A DNA stretch of 64,000 nucleotides, taken from IMG/VR virus record IMGVR_UViG_3300020202_000001, positions 160,419-224,418 of that record, one strand, 5' to 3'. The notes under the pieces were generated by a model, which saw only the letters and a program-made list of their open reading frames with translations, ran no database searches and was not told the DNA's origin. The translations under genes were made by a program, and so were the position numbers. Below, piece after piece: positions 658-20,484 of this stretch (the stretch's first letter is position 1; each line of letters starts with the position of its first letter).

Positions 658-2829
658 ATGTGGATCAAGCGAGCGCTCTTCAGGAACATCGGCCGCCACC
701 GCGAGCTGGACATCTACTTCCAGCGCGGGCTGGTGGGGATCTTCGGCCCGAACGGGTGGGGCAAGTCCACGATCGTCGACGGGATCTACGCCTGCCTGAC
801 GAACGACTGGAGCCGGTTCGCCGGCGTGAAACTCGACAACATCCGCGACACGGCCGACCCCGATGAGGAGTCGAGCATCACGGTCTGGGGCGAGCACGGG
901 GACGTGCCGTTCGAGGTGTTCCGCCGCCTCCGCCGGGCCGAGAGCGAGAAGCGGAAGAAGGGCCTCCGCAAGGACAACGAGCTGATCGTCGACGGTAAGA
1001 CGTTCGACAAGGACGAGGACATCAGGCGTGAGCTGACGGTACGCCTCGGCGTCAACCACAAGCTGATCGGCACGCACGTCTTCGTGGCCCAGCGGGAGAT
1101 GTTCCGGTTCGTCTCCGACACCCCGGGCGACCGGGCGGCGACGTTCCAGATGCTCTGCGGGACCGAGAAGGCCAAGCAGATCGTCGACGCGATCGAGGCC
1201 CTGCTGGAGCAGGACAAGGAGCTGCTGGTCGTCGTCGACGACAACAGCGACGAGATCAACGCCCGCATCGGCGGCCGGGCGGTCGAGCTGCAGGCGGCCA
1301 AGGAGGAGCTGGCGGCCGCCACGGCGCTGCTGCTGCCCAAGAAGCGGCGGCTACTTTCAAAAACCGTTATTGAGAAGCGGCAGGCCTGGCGGCGGGCGGT
1401 CAAGGCGATCACGGCCCTGAAGCCGACGATCGTCGCGAGGAAGAAGGAGGTGTCGTCGGCGGAGCTGAAGTACACGGTGACGTCCACGGAGCTGAACGCC
1501 CTCGCCGCCGCCTTCAAGCGGGACAAGCCGCTGGCAGAGGAGGCTCGGGCCACGCTGAAGCGGATCACCGAGTACAACGAGCGACAGGAGGTGCAGGGCA
1601 ACATCGAGCGGCGGCTGGCCGACGCCCGGACGAAGGTGAAGGAGCTGGGCGACCGCCCGCCCCTCCACGCGTCGGACGACAACCGCGAGCGCCTCGTCGA
1701 GGAGCGGGGCACGCTGCGGGTGGAGTACCGGGAGAACAAGACGCTCCTGACCACGTTCGCGATCGAGGGCGTGGTGAAGTGCCCGACGTGCGGCACGAGC
1801 GTCCGGGACCTCGACGAGCACCTGCGGCTCGTGAAGGTCAAGCAGCCCAGGCTCAAGGCGCGGGGGCTGAAGCTCGCCAACTTGATCGAGGCGATCGACG
1901 CGGCCCGCGCGGCCCGGGAGGCGTACGACAAGGAGCGGCGGAAGGCGGACGCGAAGGTCTCGGAGTACGAGGCCCTGCTGAAGCACGCCAAGGTGAGCGA
2001 TCCGCCGAAGGGCGACGCCAAGGCTCTGCAGCGGGTGGTCGACGACTTCGATGCGTTGGAGAAGAAGTACGACAAGGCCCGGCAGGTGAACGGCGATGCC
2101 GTCACCGCCGTGTCCACGGCCAAGGCCCGGCACGACGCCGTGGTCCAGCAGCGGGCGGACCTCCGGGTCGAGCGCGACGGCAACGTCGTGACCGACGAGG
2201 AGCTGGAGCGTGCCAAGAAGCGGATGGCCCGCCACGAGGCGGCCAAGGTCAACGTCGCCGCCCTCAAGCAGAAGGTCGAGGGGATCGAGGCGGCCCAGGC
2301 CCAGGACGTCGAGGAGCTGGAGCGGCTCAAGGCGAAGCTGGCCAAGAACAAGAAGGCCCACCAGTTCGCGGCGAAGCTCAAGAAGATCGCCGAGGTCATG
2401 CACCGGCAGGCCCTGCCGCAGATGGTGGCCCAGTCGAACCTCCAGGACATGGAGGGCGACATCAACAAGATCCTCGACATGTTCGGCAGCCCGTTCTGGG
2501 TCGAGACGGCGGAGGACCTGACCTTCACCGTCCACTTCCCGGGCGAGCCGCCGCGCAACGCCCAGCGGCTCAGCGTCGGGCAGAAGGGCGTGCTCGCGAT
2601 GGCGTTCCGCCCCGCGATCTCCGCCCTGTTCGACGCCGAGATCGGCATGATGACGCTGGACGAGCCGACCGCCGACATGGACGAGCGGAACCGCGGGTTC
2701 ATGGCCGCGGCGCTGGCCCAGTACGCGGCCCAGGTCCGGGGCCGCCGGCAGGTGATCGTCATCACCCACGCGAACGAGCTGCGGCAGTCGTTCGACCAGG
2801 TTGTGGAGCTAGGTGCACATGGCAACTGA
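658..2829 (+). CDS. sbcC: SbcC/Rad50-like SMC-family ATPase
   Basis: Walker A GPNGWGKS, long coiled coils, zinc hook CPTCG, signature LSVGQ, Walker B MTLDEPT, H-loop VITH. Confidence 0.92.
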   Translation: MWIKRALFRNIGRHRELDIYFQRGLVGIFGPNGWGKSTIVDGIYACLTNDWSRFAGVKLDNIRDTADPDEESSITVWGEHGDVPFEVFRRLRRAESEKRKKGLRKDNELIVDGKTFDKDEDIRRELTVRLGVNHKLIGTHVFVAQREMFRFVSDTPGDRAATFQMLCGTEKAKQIVDAIEALLEQDKELLVVVDDNSDEINARIGGRAVELQAAKEELAAATALLLPKKRRLLSKTVIEKRQAWRRAVKAITALKPTIVARKKEVSSAELKYTVTSTELNALAAAFKRDKPLAEEARATLKRITEYNERQEVQGNIERRLADARTKVKELGDRPPLHASDDNRERLVEERGTLRVEYRENKTLLTTFAIEGVVKCPTCGTSVRDLDEHLRLVKVKQPRLKARGLKLANLIEAIDAARAAREAYDKERRKADAKVSEYEALLKHAKVSDPPKGDAKALQRVVDDFDALEKKYDKARQVNGDAVTAVSTAKARHDAVVQQRADLRVERDGNVVTDEELERAKKRMARHEAAKVNVAALKQKVEGIEAAQAQDVEELERLKAKLAKNKKAHQFAAKLKKIAEVMHRQALPQMVAQSNLQDMEGDINKILDMFGSPFWVETAEDLTFTVHFPGEPPRNAQRLSVGQKGVLAMAFRPAISALFDAEIGMMTLDEPTADMDERNRGFMAAALAQYAAQVRGRRQVIVITHANELRQSFDQVVELGAHGN
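1354..1377. promoter_or_regulatory. degenerate copy of the 24-bp palindrome, inside sbcC
   Basis: ctttca-aaaa-ccgt-tatt-gagaag; AT-rich island in a GC3-biased gene. Confidence 0.55.
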
Positions 2830-3778
2830 GTGTCTCCGATTGCAAGTCTCGCCCGAGGGACAGGTGTGGTTCGGCGACGACCGCGAGGTCGCCGTCAACT
2901 CACGCCTGTCCCCCGAGGCGTTCGTCGCCGGCGAGCGGTTCCACGACGCGAAGCTGGTGCGGTTCCTCGGCCGGGCGGACAACGCCGTCCTGGTCGAGGC
3001 CGTGCACCAGCACAAGGCCCGGCTGGACCCGACGCAGCGGCTGTCGCTGCCGAAGGTCCAGATCGGGAGCCCGCAGATGGCGCTGGGCAAGCGGCCCGGC
3101 GACGTGCTGCCGGGCCTGTGGCACGCCTGTGTCAGCTCCGACGTGTTCGCCAGCTGGTACGAGCTGGCGGACGCGGACTACGTCGTCTACTCGCTGGTCG
3201 CGGCCGTGCGGGCCAACGGCGGGCGGCCGGACGACAAGGCGCGGCGGATCATGTACTACCACCCGGCGTGGCCGGCGATGAGCTTCACGCCCGCCTACGA
3301 CATCGACGCGTGCTGCGTGACGCTCGCGACGATCGTGGACGTGCGGTGGTTCACGCACCCGGCCAAGCCACACCGCCCGAGCAAGCTGTGGACGTACCTC
3401 GGGCTGACGCCGGAGAACGCCCGGGCGGTCTGCGGGGGCAAGCAGTACGGCGGCCACCACTACGACCGGGCGCGGACGGCGATGCGGGCGTGGCTCGGCT
3501 TCGACCCGCTCGTCTCGCACATGCTCGAAGGGAGCCTGGCCGAGAGCGGCCCGGCGTTCCTGCGACGCATCTGCGCGACGACGGAGGAGCGGAGCAAGGG
3601 CCTCCTGCTGGCGACGCGGAAGTACGTCCAGTTCTTCCGCGACGTGTGGGCGGCGGAGCGGTCGCAGGGCCGCCAGGCGTTCGAGCCCGAGATGTTTTTC
3701 AACACGACCGACGAGGTCACGGCGTACCGCTTACACCGGCAAACGCTGCACACGCCCGCCGAGGGCGGGCCGATTTGA
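2819..3778 (+). CDS. IS110/Tas-like Nop-domain protein, probably catalytically inactive
   Basis: HPAWPAMSFTP...TLATIVDVRWF...SKLWTYLGLTP and KGLLLATRKYV resemble the IS110 C-terminal/Tas Nop domain; no DEDD tetrad and no catalytic SG serine visible. Confidence 0.6.
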   Translation: MATECLRLQVSPEGQVWFGDDREVAVNSRLSPEAFVAGERFHDAKLVRFLGRADNAVLVEAVHQHKARLDPTQRLSLPKVQIGSPQMALGKRPGDVLPGLWHACVSSDVFASWYELADADYVVYSLVAAVRANGGRPDDKARRIMYYHPAWPAMSFTPAYDIDACCVTLATIVDVRWFTHPAKPHRPSKLWTYLGLTPENARAVCGGKQYGGHHYDRARTAMRAWLGFDPLVSHMLEGSLAESGPAFLRRICATTEERSKGLLLATRKYVQFFRDVWAAERSQGRQAFEPEMFFNTTDEVTAYRLHRQTLHTPAEGGPI

Positions 3779-3803
3779 CGCCCCTCTAACACGGCTGTAA
3801 CAT
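3775..3803 (+). promoter_or_regulatory. sigma70-type promoter for the RAMP-like gene
   Basis: TTGACG-17 bp-TAACAT. Confidence 0.65.
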
Positions 3804-3866
3804 GCTGTCGCGAATGGCATCGCGCACGGAACGCGCGGTTCGGCGGCACAGCCAAGGACGGCTGGA

Positions 3867-4397
3867 GTGCGAGAACTAACTGTCAGGATCAGGTTCACGA
3901 AGCACTGCCTCGGCAGGGTGCTTGACCGGTCGGCGGCGGACGGGCGAATGGTCTTCGCCCGCACCCCGGACGCCCACGTCATGTTCCCCGCGAGCTGGCA
4001 TGCCTCGAACATGGTCCTCGCGGCGAAGTTGCTCGGGCGGCATCAGGGCTCGGTACGCAAGATCCTCTGGGACCCCGAAGTGGACTGCGTGACCCGGCCC
4101 GACCGGTGGTTCAAGCGGTACTACACCGGCAGGGACAACAAGCGACGCTTCGCGGTACACGAGGCGTTCTTCCCCGGCCAGGTGGTGGGCCTGAACTGTG
4201 CGGTCCCGTCCGAGGTGTCCGACGACGACCTCGTGCAGCTGATGAACATCGCCGGCCGGTACAAGGGCCTGAGCCCGTGGGACCCCGGCGAGTACGGACA
4301 GTTCCAGGTGGAGTCGATCGCGTTGCGACGAGGGCCGGCAATCCCTCCCGCCGCGACACAGAAGGAGAGCGAACAACAGTCAAACGTCAGCGCATAA
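3867..4397 (+). CDS. stand-alone RAMP (Cas7/Csm3-like) protein
   Basis: LTVRIRFTKHCLG (beta1), VMFPAS, HEAFFPGQ, C-terminal G-rich loop AGRYKGLSPWDPGEYGQFQV. Confidence 0.6.
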   Translation: MRELTVRIRFTKHCLGRVLDRSAADGRMVFARTPDAHVMFPASWHASNMVLAAKLLGRHQGSVRKILWDPEVDCVTRPDRWFKRYYTGRDNKRRFAVHEAFFPGQVVGLNCAVPSEVSDDDLVQLMNIAGRYKGLSPWDPGEYGQFQVESIALRRGPAIPPAATQKESEQQSNVSA

Positions 4398-4425
4398 AGA
4401 AGGCCTTCGACCGGCATCGAAGGCC
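4394..4425 (-). terminator. intrinsic terminator on the minus strand
   Basis: perfect 9-bp stem ggccttcga/tcgaaggcc (4402-4410/4417-4425) followed by ttctttat on the minus strand. Confidence 0.65.
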
Positions 4426-4482
4426 CTCTCGTTCTAGGAGGTAGCTACCCCTGCGGGCGTCCACCGAAGGTTTCCAACGCCC
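4394..4482 (-). ncRNA. candidate small RNA of about 85 nt
   Basis: bounded by a minus-strand promoter and terminator; internal hairpins; contains anti-Shine-Dalgarno ctcctag; no ORF. Confidence 0.45.
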
Positions 4483-4484
4483 AC

Positions 4485-4513
4485 ATCATAGCGCCCTCCT
4501 GAACGCAATGCAA
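4485..4513 (-). promoter_or_regulatory. sigma70-type promoter on the minus strand
   Basis: TTGCAT (4513-4508)-17 bp-TATGAT (4490-4485). Confidence 0.6.
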
Positions 4514-4585
4514 TACGAGTCAAGCCCCCGCGTGCGCGAAAAACGCCGTGCCGGGTCTCCGCGTCCAGGTTGAGGGCACTACGCA

Positions 4586-6130
4586 ATGGCAGAAAAACCG
4601 CAGATAACGCTGCTCAAGAGCGGCAACCGGCTGGTCGTCGCCCCTACCCCGACGCAGGTCAGGGAGGTGCTCGAAACGAAGCTGAGCTTCACCGCGAAGC
4701 ACATGCTCTACGGTGCCGAGCGGTTCGAGGAAGGCAACAAGGGCAAGCGGTTAGAGCTGATCGACTACCAGTGCTACTTCCTCGATCACAAGAACCGCAT
4801 CGCGACCAGCCTCGGCTTTTACCACCGCATCACCAAGGCCCTGAAGGCCCGCGGCTACCCGGTCAGGATTAAGGACCTGACGCCCCCGGCAAAGCCTGAG
4901 ATCTTCGTCCCCCGCTGGAACCGCGTTCTCGGCCCCGACTCCGGCATCAAGCTGCGGCACGGGCAGAAGGAGTTCCTGGAGTGGTTCGTCGCCCAGGTGC
5001 AGGCCGGGCTCCCCGGCCGCGCCGACGCCCCGCCCGGCTACGGCAAGAGCTTCCTGATCGGCCTCGCGGCCATGCTCTTCCCGAAGGCCAAGATCCACTA
5101 CACGTCCAAGCGGGCCAGCGTCATGCGGGACCGCATCTTCCCCGAGCTGTGCGGGATGCTCCCCGACGTCGGCCTGGTCGGCGGCGGGGTGCGGAAGGCC
5201 GGCTGTCGCGTGCAGGGGTACACGTTCGACTCGCTCCACCACAGCGACGGCAAGTGCGACATCCTCTTCACCGACGAGTGCCACGAGGCGGCGGCGGACG
5301 ACGCGGCCGAGCAGCTGGCGAAGTACGACGAGAGCCTGAACTACGGGTTCAGCGCCACGCAGGACATGCGGATCGACAACAAGGACCTCCGCGTCGAGGC
5401 CATGTTCGGGCCGGTCGGCTACAAGATGACGTACCAGACCGCCGTGAAGCACGGGCTCGTCGTGCCGCTCGAAGTGCGGTGGCGGAACGTGCGGATGGAC
5501 ATGGACCCGTGCGAGGGGATCGAGGACTCGGTCGAGCGTAAGCGGTGGGGCATCTGGCGGAACCGCCACCGCAACCAGCTGATCGCCAAGGACGCGCGGA
5601 GCCACCCGGACCAGCAGGTGCTCGTCACCTGCGAGACGATCGAGCACGCGCTGGCCCTGAAGCGCGAGATGCCCGAGTTCACGCTCGTGTACGCCGCGCG
5701 GGACATCTCGTTCGAGAAGCGACGCTACTTCCGCAAGCTGGGCCTGTGGCCGAAGAAGGGCCTCAAGCAGATGACGGAGGAGCGCAAGCAGAAGCTCACC
5801 CGCCTGTTCGAGCGGGGCAAGCTGCGGAAGGTGATCGTCACGACCGTCTGGAACGTCGGCGTGTCGATGAACCACCTCGAAGTCCTGGTGCGGGCCGACG
5901 CCGGCGGCAGCCCGATCATGGACACGCAGATCCCCGGCCGCGTCAGCCGCACGAACAAGGCGATCGGCAAGAAGCAGGGCGTCATCTACGACTACAAGGA
6001 CCAGTTCAACTCCGGCTTCAAACGGAAGAGCGGCAGCCGCCGCTCCAGCTACGTCGGCAACGGCTGGACCCAGGTCGACCCAGGCACGAAACCCGGCGAG
6101 AAACTGCAGCACCGGCTGTGGGAGGATTGA
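4586..6130 (+). CDS. superfamily 2 DNA helicase (UvsW/XPB-like)
   Basis: Walker A APPGYGKS, DECH, motif III SAT, motif VI QIPGRVSR. Confidence 0.88.
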   Translation: MAEKPQITLLKSGNRLVVAPTPTQVREVLETKLSFTAKHMLYGAERFEEGNKGKRLELIDYQCYFLDHKNRIATSLGFYHRITKALKARGYPVRIKDLTPPAKPEIFVPRWNRVLGPDSGIKLRHGQKEFLEWFVAQVQAGLPGRADAPPGYGKSFLIGLAAMLFPKAKIHYTSKRASVMRDRIFPELCGMLPDVGLVGGGVRKAGCRVQGYTFDSLHHSDGKCDILFTDECHEAAADDAAEQLAKYDESLNYGFSATQDMRIDNKDLRVEAMFGPVGYKMTYQTAVKHGLVVPLEVRWRNVRMDMDPCEGIEDSVERKRWGIWRNRHRNQLIAKDARSHPDQQVLVTCETIEHALALKREMPEFTLVYAARDISFEKRRYFRKLGLWPKKGLKQMTEERKQKLTRLFERGKLRKVIVTTVWNVGVSMNHLEVLVRADAGGSPIMDTQIPGRVSRTNKAIGKKQGVIYDYKDQFNSGFKRKSGSRRSSYVGNGWTQVDPGTKPGEKLQHRLWED

Positions 6131-6133
6131 CCC

Positions 6134-6952
6134 GTGGAGGCAACCTTGAAACGACGCAGGCGGGCCGGCGGCGCTGACCGCGGCCTGGAACAACTGGCGA
6201 CGCTGCTGCTGCGCACCTGGCAGGTGGAGCTGCAGCGTTACCTGAGCATGGGCCGCGAGCCCGACGACGTCGCCGACCCCGACGACGTCGTCCGCCACCT
6301 GACCGACACGTCGGGGGCGAGGCGGCAGCGGCGGATCGACAACCTGACGGAGAACATCGAGCTGGCCCCGGCCCGCGCCCGGGTCGACCGGTCGACGAGC
6401 CTGTGGATGGACGTCGCCCGGATCGTGGTGCGGAACCGGTTCGACCCGGAGCGGTTCGTGCGGCGGCAGTTCGCCGTGCTGTCGCCCCGGATGCCGACCG
6501 AGAAGCGCAGCCGGCTCCCGCAGCCGGAAATGCTCAAGAGCGAGCGGGCGATCAAGAACTACAAGGCCGGGCACGGCGTCTCGATCACTGAGATCCAGGC
6601 CGCCTTCAAGTCGCAGCTCTCCCGGTTCAAGGTGCAGGTCGCGGTCCTCGGGCAGTCGCGGTTCTACAACCTCGACAGCGAGGGGACGTGGATCGCGGTG
6701 CTGACCAACGAGGAGGAGCCGCTGTCGGCGCTGTTCCGGTACTGCACCGCCCGCCGCATCCTCAAGCAGGCGGGGCTCAAGCAGCGGGCGAAGTTCAAGG
6801 AGATCGCGGCCACCTACCGGACGGCGGCGGCGATCCAGTACGTCTTCGAGGCGGACGAGTACGACGAGATCTGGAAGGACCACCTGCCCGAGGGCTGGTC
6901 CGAGAAGGCCCAACGTATCTACCGCAGCTTTTACGGCTTCAACGACGAGTGA
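6134..6952 (+). CDS. hypothetical replication-module protein
   Basis: 272-aa ORF with high GC3 between the two helicases; function not recognised. Confidence 0.7.
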   Translation: MEATLKRRRRAGGADRGLEQLATLLLRTWQVELQRYLSMGREPDDVADPDDVVRHLTDTSGARRQRRIDNLTENIELAPARARVDRSTSLWMDVARIVVRNRFDPERFVRRQFAVLSPRMPTEKRSRLPQPEMLKSERAIKNYKAGHGVSITEIQAAFKSQLSRFKVQVAVLGQSRFYNLDSEGTWIAVLTNEEEPLSALFRYCTARRILKQAGLKQRAKFKEIAATYRTAAAIQYVFEADEYDEIWKDHLPEGWSEKAQRIYRSFYGFNDE

Positions 6953-6966
6953 AGGAGCACGCGACC

Positions 6967-8643
6967 ATGCCCAAGCAGAGCGACAAGAAGAAGCGGAAAG
7001 AGGGTCAGTTCGAGGACATGAAGCGGCGGCCGGCGCTCGACCAGCGGAAGAAGGAGCTGATGATGGCCGTCCTCCTCCGCAACGAGGACGCCTTCAAGGC
7101 CACCCGGGAGATCCTCAAGCCCGAGCACTTCGGGGAGTTCGACCGCGGGTACAAGGTCGCGTGGGCGTTGGCCAACGAGTTCTACGACGAGCACGAGGCC
7201 CTGCCCGGCTTCGAGTTCCTGATGGCGGAGATCGAGGGGGCCAGCGAGGCCAACCCGAACCTGTTCAACGACGCCGAGTACGACAAGCTCTCGTCGTTCA
7301 TCGAGTACGCGTTCGACAAGGACAGCTTCGAGGCGGACATCACCCAGGACCGCGCCAGCGCGGACTGGGGCATCAAGACGGCGAAGAAGTTTCTCGACGA
7401 GCGGCTCGCCGCCAAGATGAAGGAGGTCATCCAGTCCAAGGACATGCTCCCGGCGAACCTGCCGGAGTTCATGAACCAGATGGCCGCCGAGGCGGAGCAG
7501 ATCGCGTCCGTCTCTACCGAGGTCGACTTCGACCCGTTCCCCGACGACTGGCACAAGACCGCCAGCATCAAGGTCTTCTCCACCGGCATCCCGTTCTTCG
7601 ACGAGTTCCTCGGCGGCGGCCACGCGCCGGGCGAGGTGTACGGGCTGATGGGGCCGTACGGGTCGTGCAAGACGACGATCGCGTCGATGCTGATCGTCGA
7701 GGCGGCCAAGGCGTTCTACCAGGAGCACCTGCTCGACCCGAGCCAGCCGCCCAAGCTGGCCGTGATCGCCTGCTACGAGGCCCGCAAGCCGGAAATGCGG
7801 AACCGGACGCTCGGGTACGCCGCGATGATCCGCCGGGCGACGATGGAGGCGATGGCCCCGGACAAGCCGCTGGAGCTGGCCGGGTTCTCGACCTCCGACA
7901 AGCTGAAGAAGTACGAGAAGCGGATCTGGCGGGCGAAGATCAACAACGGCGAGAAGGTGGCCGGGGAGCTGGAACGCGTCATGGACGCGCTGACCTACCT
8001 CCGCCGGCACATGGTCGTGCTGGACATGACCGGCCACGAGACGAAGGGCGTGGGCAACGGCGGGATCAAGGAGGTCTCGCAGATGATCTCCAACGTCTGC
8101 CGCCAGCGGAAGGCCAAGTGCGGCCTGTTCGTGATGGACTACGTCGGCGCGATGGTGAAGCGGTACATGGGCGGCAACGACGTCGAGACGAGCGAGCTGC
8201 GGCACCTGATCGGCGGGGCTCCCCTGACGATCAAGAGCCAGATCGGCGACGTGTTCGACTGCCCCTCGTACGCCCTCCACCAGCTCGCCGGCGAGGCCAA
8301 CAGCTTCGGGTCGGCCGTCCTGGCCGACCACACGAACGCGGCGGAGTCGAAGAGCTTCGCGGAGAACCTCGACTTCAGCTTCTCGATCAGCAAGCCGCAG
8401 GACCCCGACGCGGTCGCGCTGTTCGGCTGCACGAAGCACCGCCGCCAGCCGGGGCGGATGAACACGATCATCAAGATCGACGGCGGGCTCAATCGCGTGT
8501 TGTCGGCCGACGACAAGTACATGATTAACACCCACGCCCGGAAGATCATGCTGATCGCCGACGTCAACAAGCTGCCCGAGAACTCGGCGATCAAGAAGAA
8601 CAGCGCCGCGGCCGGCGGCGGGTCGGCGTCCAGCCTGGACTAG
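6967..8643 (+). CDS. DnaB-like replicative helicase
   Basis: ATG 6967; N-terminal helical domain (LKPEHF), Walker A GPYGSCKT, Walker B FVMDYV, HQL motif, TKHR arginine-finger region. Confidence 0.8.
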   Translation: MPKQSDKKKRKEGQFEDMKRRPALDQRKKELMMAVLLRNEDAFKATREILKPEHFGEFDRGYKVAWALANEFYDEHEALPGFEFLMAEIEGASEANPNLFNDAEYDKLSSFIEYAFDKDSFEADITQDRASADWGIKTAKKFLDERLAAKMKEVIQSKDMLPANLPEFMNQMAAEAEQIASVSTEVDFDPFPDDWHKTASIKVFSTGIPFFDEFLGGGHAPGEVYGLMGPYGSCKTTIASMLIVEAAKAFYQEHLLDPSQPPKLAVIACYEARKPEMRNRTLGYAAMIRRATMEAMAPDKPLELAGFSTSDKLKKYEKRIWRAKINNGEKVAGELERVMDALTYLRRHMVVLDMTGHETKGVGNGGIKEVSQMISNVCRQRKAKCGLFVMDYVGAMVKRYMGGNDVETSELRHLIGGAPLTIKSQIGDVFDCPSYALHQLAGEANSFGSAVLADHTNAAESKSFAENLDFSFSISKPQDPDAVALFGCTKHRRQPGRMNTIIKIDGGLNRVLSADDKYMINTHARKIMLIADVNKLPENSAIKKNSAAAGGGSASSLD

Positions 8644-14599: not shown

Positions 14600-16753
14600 A
14601 TGGCTCGAAACCGAGGCCTCAAGCCCCGCTCCAGCGGGCAGTACGACAACCGTTCCCACGGCCGGCGCGAGGGCGGCGGCCCGCCGGACGACCGGACGAT
14701 CAACACCCAGGTGGCCCGCGTGAACCTGGTGCGTGCGCGGTGGAAGGAGGGGCCGCTGATCGCCCGCCCGTGGCCGGCGCTGGGGTACGAGGACCCGACG
14801 CAGCTCGTGCCGGGCCGCAAGCACATCGACAGCCACGGCCAGAACCACTGGATCGTGCGTGCCCCGGTGGCGAAGTACATCGGCATCCACGAGCACTTCA
14901 CCTTCATCCTCTACAAGCCGTGGGAGGTGGAGACGAACCCGGAGGTCAAGAAGAACAACCCGTACCTCGTGCTCTACCGCGCGGCGAAGGCGGCCCTCAA
15001 GGCCGGCAACTTCGGCCCCGGGCGGAAGTGGGACGCGGACTGGAACAAGCTGATGCCGACGATCGGCGGCGACGACACGGGCGGTGCCCCGATGTCCAAC
15101 CCGAACGCGGTCGGCTTCTTCCAGGGCGAGATCTACGCCAACGGCGACAAGGACTACATCGGCAACGACCGCACCCTGCCGCTCGGCGCGGCGGACGGCG
15201 ACGACCTGCAGGTGGTCCAGATCGCCGGGGCCGCGTTCGACCGGCTGCTCGATCTGCTCGACACGCCCAAGCCGGACGCGGAGGGTGACGAGGAGAAGGA
15301 GCCCTGGAAGTTCTTCAAGTTCGGCGACCCGACCGGCGTCCCGCAGGAGGACGGCAGCGTCGAGGGCGGCAAGTTCATCTACGTCTTCAACCCCAAGCGG
15401 GCGAAGGTGAAGGACGGCGACAAGGGCAAGATCGTCACCGTGGGCGGGCAGAGCTTCATGCTCAGCCGGTCCAGCTGGGAGGGCAAGATCAGCCAGACCC
15501 AGGGGTACGAGACGGCCCTGGCCAGCGTGTTCAAGAGCGAGGACGGGACGAAGTTCACGCCCGACCTCGACAACGACCGGGCCGAGCGCGTCCGCGACAC
15601 GTTCCAGTTCTGGTGGGACGACGAGGAGAGCGGGCAGAAGGGCCTGCTCAAGGTCCCCTCGATCGAGGAGCAGTGCGTGCTGATCGCCCGCGCGTTCCAG
15701 GACGTCCCCAAGCTGCTGACGTATGCCTGGGGCGACCACGACGAGTTCCTGTCCGGCGAGGTGCAGGACATCCTCAAGCAGAAGCGCACGGCGGCCATGC
15801 CGGGCGACGACGACGAGCGTGACGCCGCCCGCGGCGACGACGACGACGATGACGTGGAGGGCGACGACGACGACGACGCGCCGAAGGCGGGCAAGAAGGT
15901 CCGCACCGACCCCACGCAGAAGACCGGCAAGAAGAAGCCGGCCGACGACGAGGACGACGACACGGACGGCGACGACGATGACGACGCCGACGAGAAGCCG
16001 GCCGCCGGCAAGAAGGGCGACAAGAAGAAGCCCGCCAAGAAGGACGATGACGAGGACGACGACGCCGACGACGACACGGACGCGGAGAACGCGGACGATG
16101 ACGACGCCGGCGACGACGACGATGACGCCGACGACACGGACGACACCGGCGACGACGAGGACGAGGCCGAGGGCGAAGCCGAGGCGGGCGACGACGACGA
16201 TGACGCCGACGACTCGGACGACGACGAGGCCGGTGACGATGACGACGACACCGACGAGGACGCTGGCGACGACGACGACGCTGACGACACCGACGACGAT
16301 GACGCCGGTGACGACGACGACGACGACGCGGACGCGCCCAAGCCCGGCAAGAAGGGCGACAAGAAGCCGGCGGGCAAGGCCGACAAGAAGCCGGCCGGCA
16401 AGAAGGACGACGACGACGAGAACGCCGGCTACTTCGCCGAGGGCGACGACGACAAGAAGCCCGCGGGCAAGAAGGGCGACAAGAAGCCGGCCGCGAAGAA
16501 GGACGACGACGACGACGCGGACGATGACGACGCCGGCGACGACGCCGACGACGACAAGACCGCGTCGATGAAGAAGTCCACGGACGCCGCCCGCGACCGC
16601 GCGGGCAAGCGTGCCAACCTGCCGCCCGACAAGAAGGGCGACGGGAAGAAGCCCGCCGCCGACAAGAAGCCGGCCGACAAGCCGGCGGACAAGAAGGCGG
16701 ACAAGAAGCCGGCGGATAAGCCCGCCGCCGGCAAGACCGGCAAGAAGAAGTAG
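14600..16753 (+). CDS. probable ssDNA-binding protein with very long Asp-rich and Lys-rich tail
   Basis: about 400-aa aromatic-rich globular N-terminus followed by about 300 aa of D-rich and KKPA repeats; sits between tmk and recA. SSB call is inference. Confidence 0.5.
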   Translation: MARNRGLKPRSSGQYDNRSHGRREGGGPPDDRTINTQVARVNLVRARWKEGPLIARPWPALGYEDPTQLVPGRKHIDSHGQNHWIVRAPVAKYIGIHEHFTFILYKPWEVETNPEVKKNNPYLVLYRAAKAALKAGNFGPGRKWDADWNKLMPTIGGDDTGGAPMSNPNAVGFFQGEIYANGDKDYIGNDRTLPLGAADGDDLQVVQIAGAAFDRLLDLLDTPKPDAEGDEEKEPWKFFKFGDPTGVPQEDGSVEGGKFIYVFNPKRAKVKDGDKGKIVTVGGQSFMLSRSSWEGKISQTQGYETALASVFKSEDGTKFTPDLDNDRAERVRDTFQFWWDDEESGQKGLLKVPSIEEQCVLIARAFQDVPKLLTYAWGDHDEFLSGEVQDILKQKRTAAMPGDDDERDAARGDDDDDDVEGDDDDDAPKAGKKVRTDPTQKTGKKKPADDEDDDTDGDDDDDADEKPAAGKKGDKKKPAKKDDDEDDDADDDTDAENADDDDAGDDDDDADDTDDTGDDEDEAEGEAEAGDDDDDADDSDDDEAGDDDDDTDEDAGDDDDADDTDDDDAGDDDDDDADAPKPGKKGDKKPAGKADKKPAGKKDDDDENAGYFAEGDDDKKPAGKKGDKKPAAKKDDDDDADDDDAGDDADDDKTASMKKSTDAARDRAGKRANLPPDKKGDGKKPAADKKPADKPADKKADKKPADKPAAGKTGKKK
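15826..16753 (+). repeat. low-complexity gac/gat and aagaagccg(gcc) coding repeats
   Basis: poly-Asp runs and recurring GKKGDKKPA / DKKPA units. Confidence 0.85.
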
Positions 16754-19590: not shown

Positions 19591-20484
19591 ATGAGCAAGA
19601 ACGAATCCACGCTTCTCCCCGAAGAGCAGAAGCGCGCGGCGATCTACGAAGAGATGTCCCCGGCCCTCAAGAAGGTCGCGGACGACTTCCGCAAGAAGGA
19701 GGCCGTCGCCTCCAAGGGCAACCTCACCCTCCGCTACGACATGGGCGTGAAGGTGAAGCAGGTGATCGAGGAGGAGGCCGAGTACGGCGCGAACGCCGTC
19801 AAGCAGCTCGCCGCCTTCCTCGGCCGCTCGGAGACGGACCTGTACGACCTGCGGAACGTCGTGACCACCTACGACAAGGACGAGATCATCGCCCTGTCGG
19901 AGCGCGAGATGGCCAACGGCGGGCACATCACGATGGGCCACGTCATGGCCATCGTCCGCGTGAAGAAGCAGGCCGACCGGAAGAAGCTGTGGGACCGCGT
20001 GTTCGCCGAGTCCCTCACCGTGGGCCAGCTCGCCGGCGAGGTGTCGGCCGGGTACGAGAAGGCCAACAAGCGCTCGGGCGGCCGCAAGCCGTCCAAGCCG
20101 ACGAGCCCCGTGGCGGGCATCGCCCAGATCGCGGAGCGGACGCAGGAGCTGAACAACCGCTTCGAGGGCTGGGACGAGACCGTGTTCACGGCCATCGCCG
20201 ACCTCCCCCCGGACAAGATCGACAAGATCGTCCTGGAGAAGGCCGAGAAGGCCAGCGCGGAGCTGCACAAGCTGGAGGAGAACCTCACCCAGTACGTCGG
20301 CAAGTACGACAAGGGCGTCGAGCACATCCGCAAGGTCGTGGCGGCGAAGGCGAAGGAAGAGGCCGACGCCAAGGCCGAGCACAAGAAGGAAGAGAAGCAG
20401 CTCGAAGGCAAGGGCGCGAAGAAGGCAGTCGGCAAGAAGGCCGACGCGAAGGCCGGCAAGAGCCGCCGGCCCGCTGCCGCCTAA
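19591..20484 (+). CDS. ParB/Spo0J-type HTH DNA-binding protein lacking the CTPase domain
   Basis: LGRSETDLYDLRNVV and ITMGHVMAIVRV...LWDRVFAESLTVGQL resemble the Spo0J DNA-binding domain; coiled-coil and basic tail; strong RBS aaggag. Confidence 0.6.
   Translation: MSKNESTLLPEEQKRAAIYEEMSPALKKVADDFRKKEAVASKGNLTLRYDMGVKVKQVIEEEAEYGANAVKQLAAFLGRSETDLYDLRNVVTTYDKDEIIALSEREMANGGHITMGHVMAIVRVKKQADRKKLWDRVFAESLTVGQLAGEVSAGYEKANKRSGGRKPSKPTSPVAGIAQIAERTQELNNRFEGWDETVFTAIADLPPDKIDKIVLEKAEKASAELHKLEENLTQYVGKYDKGVEHIRKVVAAKAKEEADAKAEHKKEEKQLEGKGAKKAVGKKADAKAGKSRRPAAA

Follow-up and report, generated by a model that had tools for sequence, protein, structure and literature searches.

What would two adjacent genes, each resembling a component of a different RNA-guided system, do among the replication genes of a jumbo phage? 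The question is posed by a 64-kb stretch of high GC content (~67%), hereafter the window, of the IMG/VR contig IMGVR_UViG_3300020202_000001 (224,418 bp; locus L008), in which the genes g1 and g2 and a non-coding unit at 4394-4513 lie between sbcC and an SF2 helicase gene, with both genes on the plus strand. Megablast and tblastn searches of GenBank phages returned no match to the window and no near relative. As detailed below, g1 and g2 are a conserved, co-expressed pair that ends the sbcD...sbcC operon of a jumbo-phage lineage, and we tentatively read them as parts of a ribonucleoprotein.

A minimal RAMP beside a protein with remote Tas similarity

The gene g2 (3867-4397, plus strand; 176 amino acids) starts at a GTG codon at 3867, a position fixed by the N-terminus MRELTVRIRF, which is conserved in 38 homologues. 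g2 had no Pfam match, a Pfam scan of its family members matched no RAMP model and gave no consistent family, and the g2 homologues, which fall into at least 99 clusters, come from metagenome or metagenome-assembled genome (MAG) sources throughout, with no NR or UniRef source among those listed. The AlphaFold2 model of g2, built from 39 sequences (pLDDT 92.7, pTM 0.81), comprises one RRM-type core, a β-hairpin and a glycine-rich loop (G-loop) ahead of the last strand. When this model was compared with the PDB by Foldseek, the top matches listed were exclusively Csm3 and type VII Cas7 proteins, aligned over the full length of g2 (E 9e-7 to 5e-5, probability 1.0, TM 0.5-0.6, ~185-200 columns, 9-15% identity). 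The original prediction of a Cas7-like RAMP is borne out by this comparison (E ~1e-6, probability 1.0).

Against PDB sequences, the g2 profile found a single weak match, the "SUSP1 Vipr protein" (36pp_D, E 1.3). VIPR systems, reported in 2026 from, for example, Escherichia phage SUSP1, consist of the RAMP Vipr, a vrRNA and a Vap protein (bioRxiv 10.64898/2026.04.26.720920, 10.64898/2026.04.26.720927). The SUSP1 Vipr (locus L007) belongs to the core of phrog_4652 (E 1.4e-96), a family that is matched by 26 of the 39 g2-family members (best 3.7e-5). Direct comparison of the two families by hhalign gave 90.7% probability and an E value of 1.2e-6 over 39 columns only, which comprise the last helix, the G-loop and the last strand. 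In SUSP1 Vipr the GGY motif is read by H17, R138, D177, W178 and R179, with D177 reading the first G and W178 stacking on the second (10.64898/2026.04.26.720920, 10.64898/2026.04.26.720927). W178 aligns with g2 W138, which is kept in most g2 members; D177 aligns with the invariant P137 and R179 with a variable column, and the alignment does not reach H17 or R138. By these comparisons g2 is a minimal RAMP folded like the Cas7/Csm3 backbone subunits, with a C-terminal helix and a G-loop homologous to those of Vipr. Given this homology and the replacement of D177 by proline, g2 is Vipr-like but probably reads a different RNA motif. A separate feature of g2 is the dipeptide H98-E99 (window 4158-4163), which is invariant in the β-hairpin of all 39 aligned homologues, finds no equivalent where g2 and Vipr align and may be an RNA-processing or RNA-contact site.

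The upstream gene, g1 (2819-3778, plus strand; 319 amino acids), was also placed in a large family, as an exhaustive HMMER search returned 622 representative clusters at E<=1e-3, nearly all of 290-335 amino acids; neither gene is thus the orphan it had been taken for. The AlphaFold2 model of g1 (58 sequences; pLDDT 93.6, pTM 0.91) consists of an N-terminal β-β-β-α-β-α-β-α domain followed by a helical C-terminal half, and a coiled-coil check of its secondary structure found no paired long helices, the longest helix having 24 residues. When the members were scanned singly, 40 of 58 matched the NCBIfam model NF052498 (TIGR_Tas_endo; best 3.8e-6, window copy 0.041), with scores of 14-22 bits against a cut-off of 100 bits. 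A further model, phrog_4285 ("transposase"), was matched by 30 of 58 (best 8e-6) and the IS110 model, weakly, by two of 58 (one of them from L003), while other NCBIfam families were matched by one member each. The matches always fell at residues ~125-218 of g1, corresponding to positions 43-113 of 215 in the Tas model and 183-279 of 343 in the IS110 model, the place at which a guide-binding domain would be expected after RuvC in a RuvC+Nop layout. Because all scores are far under the curated cut-offs, the relation of g1 to Tas and IS110 is, at the level of sequence, one of remote similarity and not of membership.

The window g1 had no Pfam match, and a Pfam scan of all g1 members gave no consistent family. 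When PDB sequences were searched with profiles of the full-length protein and of the C-terminal half, no Tas or IS110 protein came up; the sole match, CsgG, was judged to be due to chance. Foldseek searches of the PDB and BFVD with the g1 model returned no match (best E 0.18-0.59), and an RNase-H-like reading of the N-terminal domain therefore draws on strand order alone. Most members carry H9, D11, H114 and an acidic residue at 120 in this domain, positions occupied by Q, S, Y and D in the window copy. Lacking three of these four family-conserved residues, the window copy may fairly be described as "dead" at this putatively catalytic site. A check for the IS110 DEDD set and serine found no invariant acidic set and no conserved serine in the family. 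The dead IS110/Tas-like Nop protein originally proposed is thus weakly supported, by consistent sub-threshold profile matches, and finds no match by Foldseek or among PDB sequences.

The conservation of the pair was traced around g2 homologues in four lookups and 42 IMG/VR loci; the contigs reach 235 kb, many exceed 150 kb, and their g2-helicase spacers have ~40 to 61% GC. The order is sbcC, g1, g2, helicase, and g1, recognised by profile or tblastn, lies directly upstream of g2 in all loci retrieved via g2 except L022. Of the related loci, roughly 29 are distinct, and in only one of these are the two genes not adjacent; in L034-L043 the helicase gene directly follows g2. Co-occurrence of g1 and g2 in relatives, a synteny check proposed with the original prediction, therefore holds across more than 40 loci, the exceptions being L022 and L053. 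In the window the ATG of g1 overlaps the sbcC stop codon at 2827-2829, and an sbcC stop that overlaps or abuts the g1 start is seen in relatives as well, where g1 is usually translationally coupled to sbcC and the g1-g2 spacer is often 1-11 nucleotides (nt) or an overlap. g2 and the helicase each share a median identity of 45% with their window counterparts, against 34% for sbcC and 28% for g1. A search of 185,579 bacterial and archaeal species genomes found one locus only, on a 36-kb MAG contig. The pair behaves as core genes of a phage lineage and not as a patchy defence island.

The replication block and its minus-strand small RNA

Every gene between 658 and 13756 is on the plus strand, in the order SbcC-like ATPase, g1, g2, 188-nt spacer, SF2 helicase, unknown gene, DnaB-like helicase, primase and PolA, with a UvsX-like recombinase further downstream of PolA. 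The flanking genes were identified by their Pfam and PHROG matches, the sbcC/Rad50-like ATPase (658-2829, plus strand) by SMC_N, AAA_23 and phrog_77 (E 1e-39) and the SF2 helicase (4586-6130, plus strand), the first gene past the pair, by Helicase_C, ResIII and phrog_16 (E 1e-28); the pair lies inside a replication block. In the window g2 is flanked by 88 nt upstream and 188 nt downstream, and in relatives by anything from an overlap (-13) to 135 nt upstream, mostly 1-60, and by 1-188 nt downstream. The 88-nt g1-g2 spacer, with its sigma-70-like promoter match (TTGACG, 17 nt, TAACAT; 3775-3803, plus strand), is peculiar to the window, and the promoter match is not conserved because the spacer in relatives is short or overlapping. 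The third-position GC content of g2 is 0.86, compared with 0.95-0.96 in its neighbours.

Several further features of the region were recorded. Between PolA and the UvsX-like recombinase lies a 717-amino-acid open reading frame (14600-16753) with long GAC/AAG-type repeats that encode Asp-rich and Lys/Pro/Ala-rich stretches; it has no Pfam or PHROG match. A 297-amino-acid open reading frame at 19591-20484, 15 kb from g1, has a weak match to the ParB helix-turn-helix (E 4e-4, under the cut-off); TIGR systems are associated with parB-like genes according to the TIGR-Tas paper (10.64898/2026.09.09.750476). The PolA genes of the family (L002 from 11905 onward, L003, L005 and L006) have an N-terminal uracil-DNA-glycosylase domain (precomputed Pfam UDG + DNA_pol_A). 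In L041 and L042 (~4500-7055) the SF2 helicase frame has ~887 codons, compared with ~500, and similarity to the window helicase is interrupted by ~1 kb of inserted sequence, possibly an intein or homing-endonuclease insertion.

The spacer between g2 and the helicase gene holds a predicted small RNA on the minus strand. Its sigma-70-type promoter (4485-4513, minus strand) has a -35 box TTGCAT at 4513-4508, a 17-nt spacer and a -10 box TATGAT at 4490-4485, and the RNA of ~84 nt is predicted to run from ~4478, a start placed ~7 nt past the -10 box, to 4394. A hairpin at 4398-4429 is predicted to serve as a two-way terminator that ends the sbcC-g1-g2 transcript and terminates the minus-strand RNA, for which its U-rich tail ends near 4394. 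The promoter- and terminator-bounded segment of the original prediction is hence indeed bounded, with essentially the same ends, but lies on the minus strand. Among 26 distinct spacers of relatives, the pattern TTGnnn, 16-18 nt, TAnnnT occurs on the minus strand in 23 and on the plus strand in none, whereas shuffled spacers gave 1.8 on average and at most 7. The terminator stem covaries in relatives, with compensatory changes in 9 of 11 and in 10 of 13 pairs, and the A-tract that precedes the hairpin on their plus strand is a U-tract for the minus-strand transcript. The predicted folds of the spacer are also better than those of shuffled sequence, with z scores of -2.8 (plus strand) and -4.5 (minus strand), and the unit is the sole promoter-to-terminator unit found in the loci L008 (8.5 kb), L024 and L005. 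A stricter consensus scan of the window picked up neither the promoter nor the terminator, and neither the RNA nor the spacer matched an Rfam family. With its own predicted promoter, a predicted intrinsic terminator and conservation, the 4394-4478 unit has the features of a bacterial-type small RNA gene; the small RNA is probably real, and it may or may not be tied to the g1 and g2 proteins.

Two other interpretations of the spacer were rejected. The plus-strand hairpin at 4430-4505, with internal-loop sides of 11 and 13 nt, had been considered as a stem-loop tigRNA, and relatives have compact hairpins without the loops. The conserved CATCATAGCG motif had been considered as a recurring plus-strand phage promoter; it does not recur in the window and reads as the minus-strand -10 box.

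The predicted RNA begins with a hairpin at its 5' end, continues with a short single-stranded linker rich in C and ends in the terminator, and its sequence is nearly constant among close relatives, so that it is not a variable guide. In the g2-helicase spacer a G/T-rich plus-strand motif of 9-13 nt (GTGTAGCGG or GGTGTG-type) was observed that recurs ~2.3-2.4 kb downstream, just before the DnaB-like helicase gene, in several lineages (L019, L021, L023, L024, L025 and L027 at ~4540 and ~6830-6910; L013 at 4583 and 6981; also L017, L033, L022 and L001). This recurring motif is complementary to the single-stranded linker, and it could be a small-RNA target or a repeated plus-strand control element; the recurrence of the linker complement before the DnaB-like gene points to a regulatory role at helicase genes. 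In the window itself the second site was not found, and the window RNA has no complementarity of 12 nt or more within the 64 kb.

We give an even chance to the possibility that the small RNA is a regulator of the helicase genes unrelated to g1 and g2, acting as an antisense or seed-pairing RNA, or that the spacer holds a plus-strand control element. The RNA unit is present without g2 in L053, and g2 is present without the RNA in other loci; in most loci 11-33 nt separate the -35 box from the start of the helicase gene; and a nearly constant RNA whose linker complement appears again before the DnaB-like gene fits such a role. Against it, most lineages have the RNA beside g2, the two share a terminator, L053 retains g1, and the second linker site is missing from the window. 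The same loci mean that the small RNA is not the obligatory module partner first proposed, as a whole clade has g2-helicase gaps of 1-4 nt and L053 has the RNA without g2.

A proposed non-cutting ribonucleoprotein and its alternatives

For the pair itself we tentatively favour, with a confidence slightly short of even, a non-cutting ribonucleoprotein built on a constant RNA, with DNA as its target in the context of replication and recombination. In this complex g2 would coat a single-stranded stretch of RNA and g1 would hold a structured part of it, and the complex would bind DNA via base pairing, in the manner of gene-silencing Vipr and of dead TasR and TasA. Vipr together with its vrRNA silences DNA (10.64898/2026.04.26.720920), and in TIGR-Tas, described in 2025, dead TasR and TasA repress transcription (10.64898/2026.09.09.750476). 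As the pair has a fixed place in a replication and recombination block and no array was found in the regions searched, we would expect one constant RNA, or a few, and not a library of guides that changes. The adjoining minus-strand small RNA would be the best local candidate, without being required everywhere.

A number of findings weigh against this reading. The vrRNAs of VIPR consist of at least four tandem YNNGG (or NNNGG/YNNNG) units in flanking intergenic DNA (10.64898/2026.04.26.720920, 10.64898/2026.04.26.720927), and a period-5 YNNGG/NNNGG scanner, which in a control recovered all four published SUSP1 vrRNAs, found no more such runs than expected by chance, whether in the 64-kb window or in 48 related loci (±4 kb). 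Tandem- and direct-repeat searches returned coding repeats only, with no TIGR or CRISPR array in the larger gaps of the window. The RNA partner of g1 and g2 is a candidate only, and the small RNA is absent beside g2 in the whole tight-spacer clade, in which the gap of 1-4 nt is too short for an RNA gene. Structure searches with the g1 model did not match TasR, TasH or IS621 (whose presence in the PDB library was presumed and unconfirmed), and in g2 the residue that corresponds to the first-G reader of Vipr is a proline. In L022, sbcC (1849-3981) abuts g2 (4001-4492) without g1, and in L053, g1 (1367-2362) is followed by a spacer and the helicase (2564-4090), with no g2 within the 7.3 kb covered and no adjacent sbcC; g1 and g2 are therefore not strictly interdependent.

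Rfam gave no CRISPR family, no cas Pfam match was found among the neighbours, and among the matches listed from a collection-wide scan for eight GGYNN units none was on a contig of the family. No box C/D stem-loop tigRNA unit was found at the locus by the tandem- and direct-repeat search, which was run without degenerate box motifs. In support of the original prediction, no cas1, CRISPR array, TIGR array or transposon-like mobility was seen, and the location is fixed and syntenic.

The alternative with the next best claim, which we regard as unlikely though well worth weighing, is a housekeeping accessory of replication and recombination that uses no guide RNA. g2 would here coat single-stranded DNA or RNA-DNA hybrids arising from SbcCD or the helicases, and g1 would bind branched DNA, the folds having been borrowed from RNA-guided ancestors, or the reverse. 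Strict synteny, the translational coupling of g1 to sbcC, a g2 conserved as much as the helicase and the lack of arrays in the searches all fit this explanation, as do the clade whose 1-4 nt spacers leave an RNA gene no room and L053, in which g1 remains beside the helicase despite the absence of g2 and sbcC. The annotated replication genes of the window also include no canonical single-stranded DNA-binding protein. However, to our knowledge all characterised RAMPs and Nop-domain proteins bind RNA, and the G-loop common to g2 and Vipr is an RNA-contacting element. The DNA examined is, moreover, 64 kb of a 224-kb genome, and a single-stranded DNA-binding protein or an RNA gene could lie elsewhere.

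Relation to known RNA-guided systems

VIPR loci typically have two genes and long intergenic flanks, and solo vrRNAs far from vipr have been reported (10.64898/2026.04.26.720920, 10.64898/2026.04.26.720927). Like Vipr, g2 is phage-encoded, has a mass of ~20 kDa and is made up of one RRM, a thumb and a glycine-rich loop; both form two-gene units with an adjoining accessory gene in the absence of cas genes, and they share the homologous C-terminal helix and G-loop, including W138. The g1-g2 loci differ in that no YNNGG-type repeat RNA was detected, the flanks are short or absent, P137 replaces D177 and the profiles align over 39 columns only. Furthermore, the accessory gene here precedes the RAMP gene, the partner is Tas-like and not a Vap of a known kind, the pair keeps a constant place in the replication block, and the g2 family has no listed NR or UniRef source. 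Held against VIPR, the locus thus has a minimal RAMP, with homology in the G-loop region only, and short flanks, and no vrRNA was found in the regions searched.

These points bear on an improbable alternative, namely that g1 and g2 belong to an ordinary VIPR system, its type as yet unclassified, that is aimed at competing phages or satellites, with g1 as its vap and the vrRNAs elsewhere in the 224-kb genome: the size, fold and G-loop of g2, the two-gene layout, the precedent of distant solo vrRNAs and the absence of NR or UniRef sources, through which an NR-based census could have missed the family, argue for it, but the lack of pentanucleotide-repeat RNA in the 64 kb and around the 48 loci, the short flanks in place of long ones, GGY readers that are only partly kept and a fixed core position unlike that of a warfare module argue against it.

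The likeness of g1 to TIGR-Tas proteins lies in its length of ~300 amino acids, an N-terminal α/β domain followed by a helical domain and sub-threshold similarity to the Tas Nop domain. Unlike them, g1 scores 14-22 bits against 100, has no fold match to solved Tas proteins and is accompanied by no box C/D units that could be found. In place of a TIGR array, the sole spacer holds one RNA of hairpin, linker and terminator. A divergent clade of compact TasR proteins lacks arrays and the coiled coil, occurs in densely packed viral genomes and has a guide source left open by its authors (10.64898/2026.09.09.750476). By description only, g1 of the window matches this clade, as it lacks catalytic-type residues and lies in a dense viral genome, with no array in the regions searched. 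The TIGR-Tas work (10.64898/2026.09.09.750476) mentions no RAMP neighbour, whereas g1 has g2. Neither half qualifies as a full member of VIPR or of TIGR-Tas, because no array was found in the regions searched.

Two further groups were compared. Class 1 CRISPR backbone subunits (Csm3, Cmr4 and type VII Cas7) supply the best structural matches to full-length g2, but identity is 9-15%, no Pfam RAMP model matches, and there is no array, no cas gene and no second RRM. IS110 shares with g1 its domain order and a local motif similarity before the catalytic serine; g1, however, has weak matches in only two of 58 members, no conserved serine and no DEDD set, and it is fixed and syntenic across more than 40 loci and not mobile. 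In the literature searched, no paper linked a RAMP with a Nop-domain protein. The pairing thus remains as undescribed as first claimed, but both halves now have named relatives, in VIPR (2026) and TIGR-Tas (2025).

A bolder extension of the ribonucleoprotein reading, to which we assign a very low probability, is a third RNA-guided DNA-binding complex, in which a Vipr-like RAMP filament and an array-less dead Tas-like protein would share one constant phage RNA and act on the phage's own DNA metabolism. Such a complex might open or stabilise an R-loop to load the neighbouring helicases or start replication, or it might steer SbcCD, and would not serve to fight rivals. If true, this would explain the array-less Tas clade and unite the RAMP and Nop lineages in one effector.

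Relatives of VIPR and TIGR-Tas, described separately in 2025-2026, are found here side by side, fixed, well conserved and without an array in the regions searched. The RAMP partner is a concrete, testable answer to the question of where array-less compact TasR proteins obtain their guides, and the g2 family widens the Vipr-like RAMPs to jumbo phages that are known from metagenomes alone and lie outside an NR-based census. If the pair is RNA-guided, it would be a minimal two-protein effector uniting two guide-binding folds; if it is not, both folds would have been reused in DNA replication or recombination.

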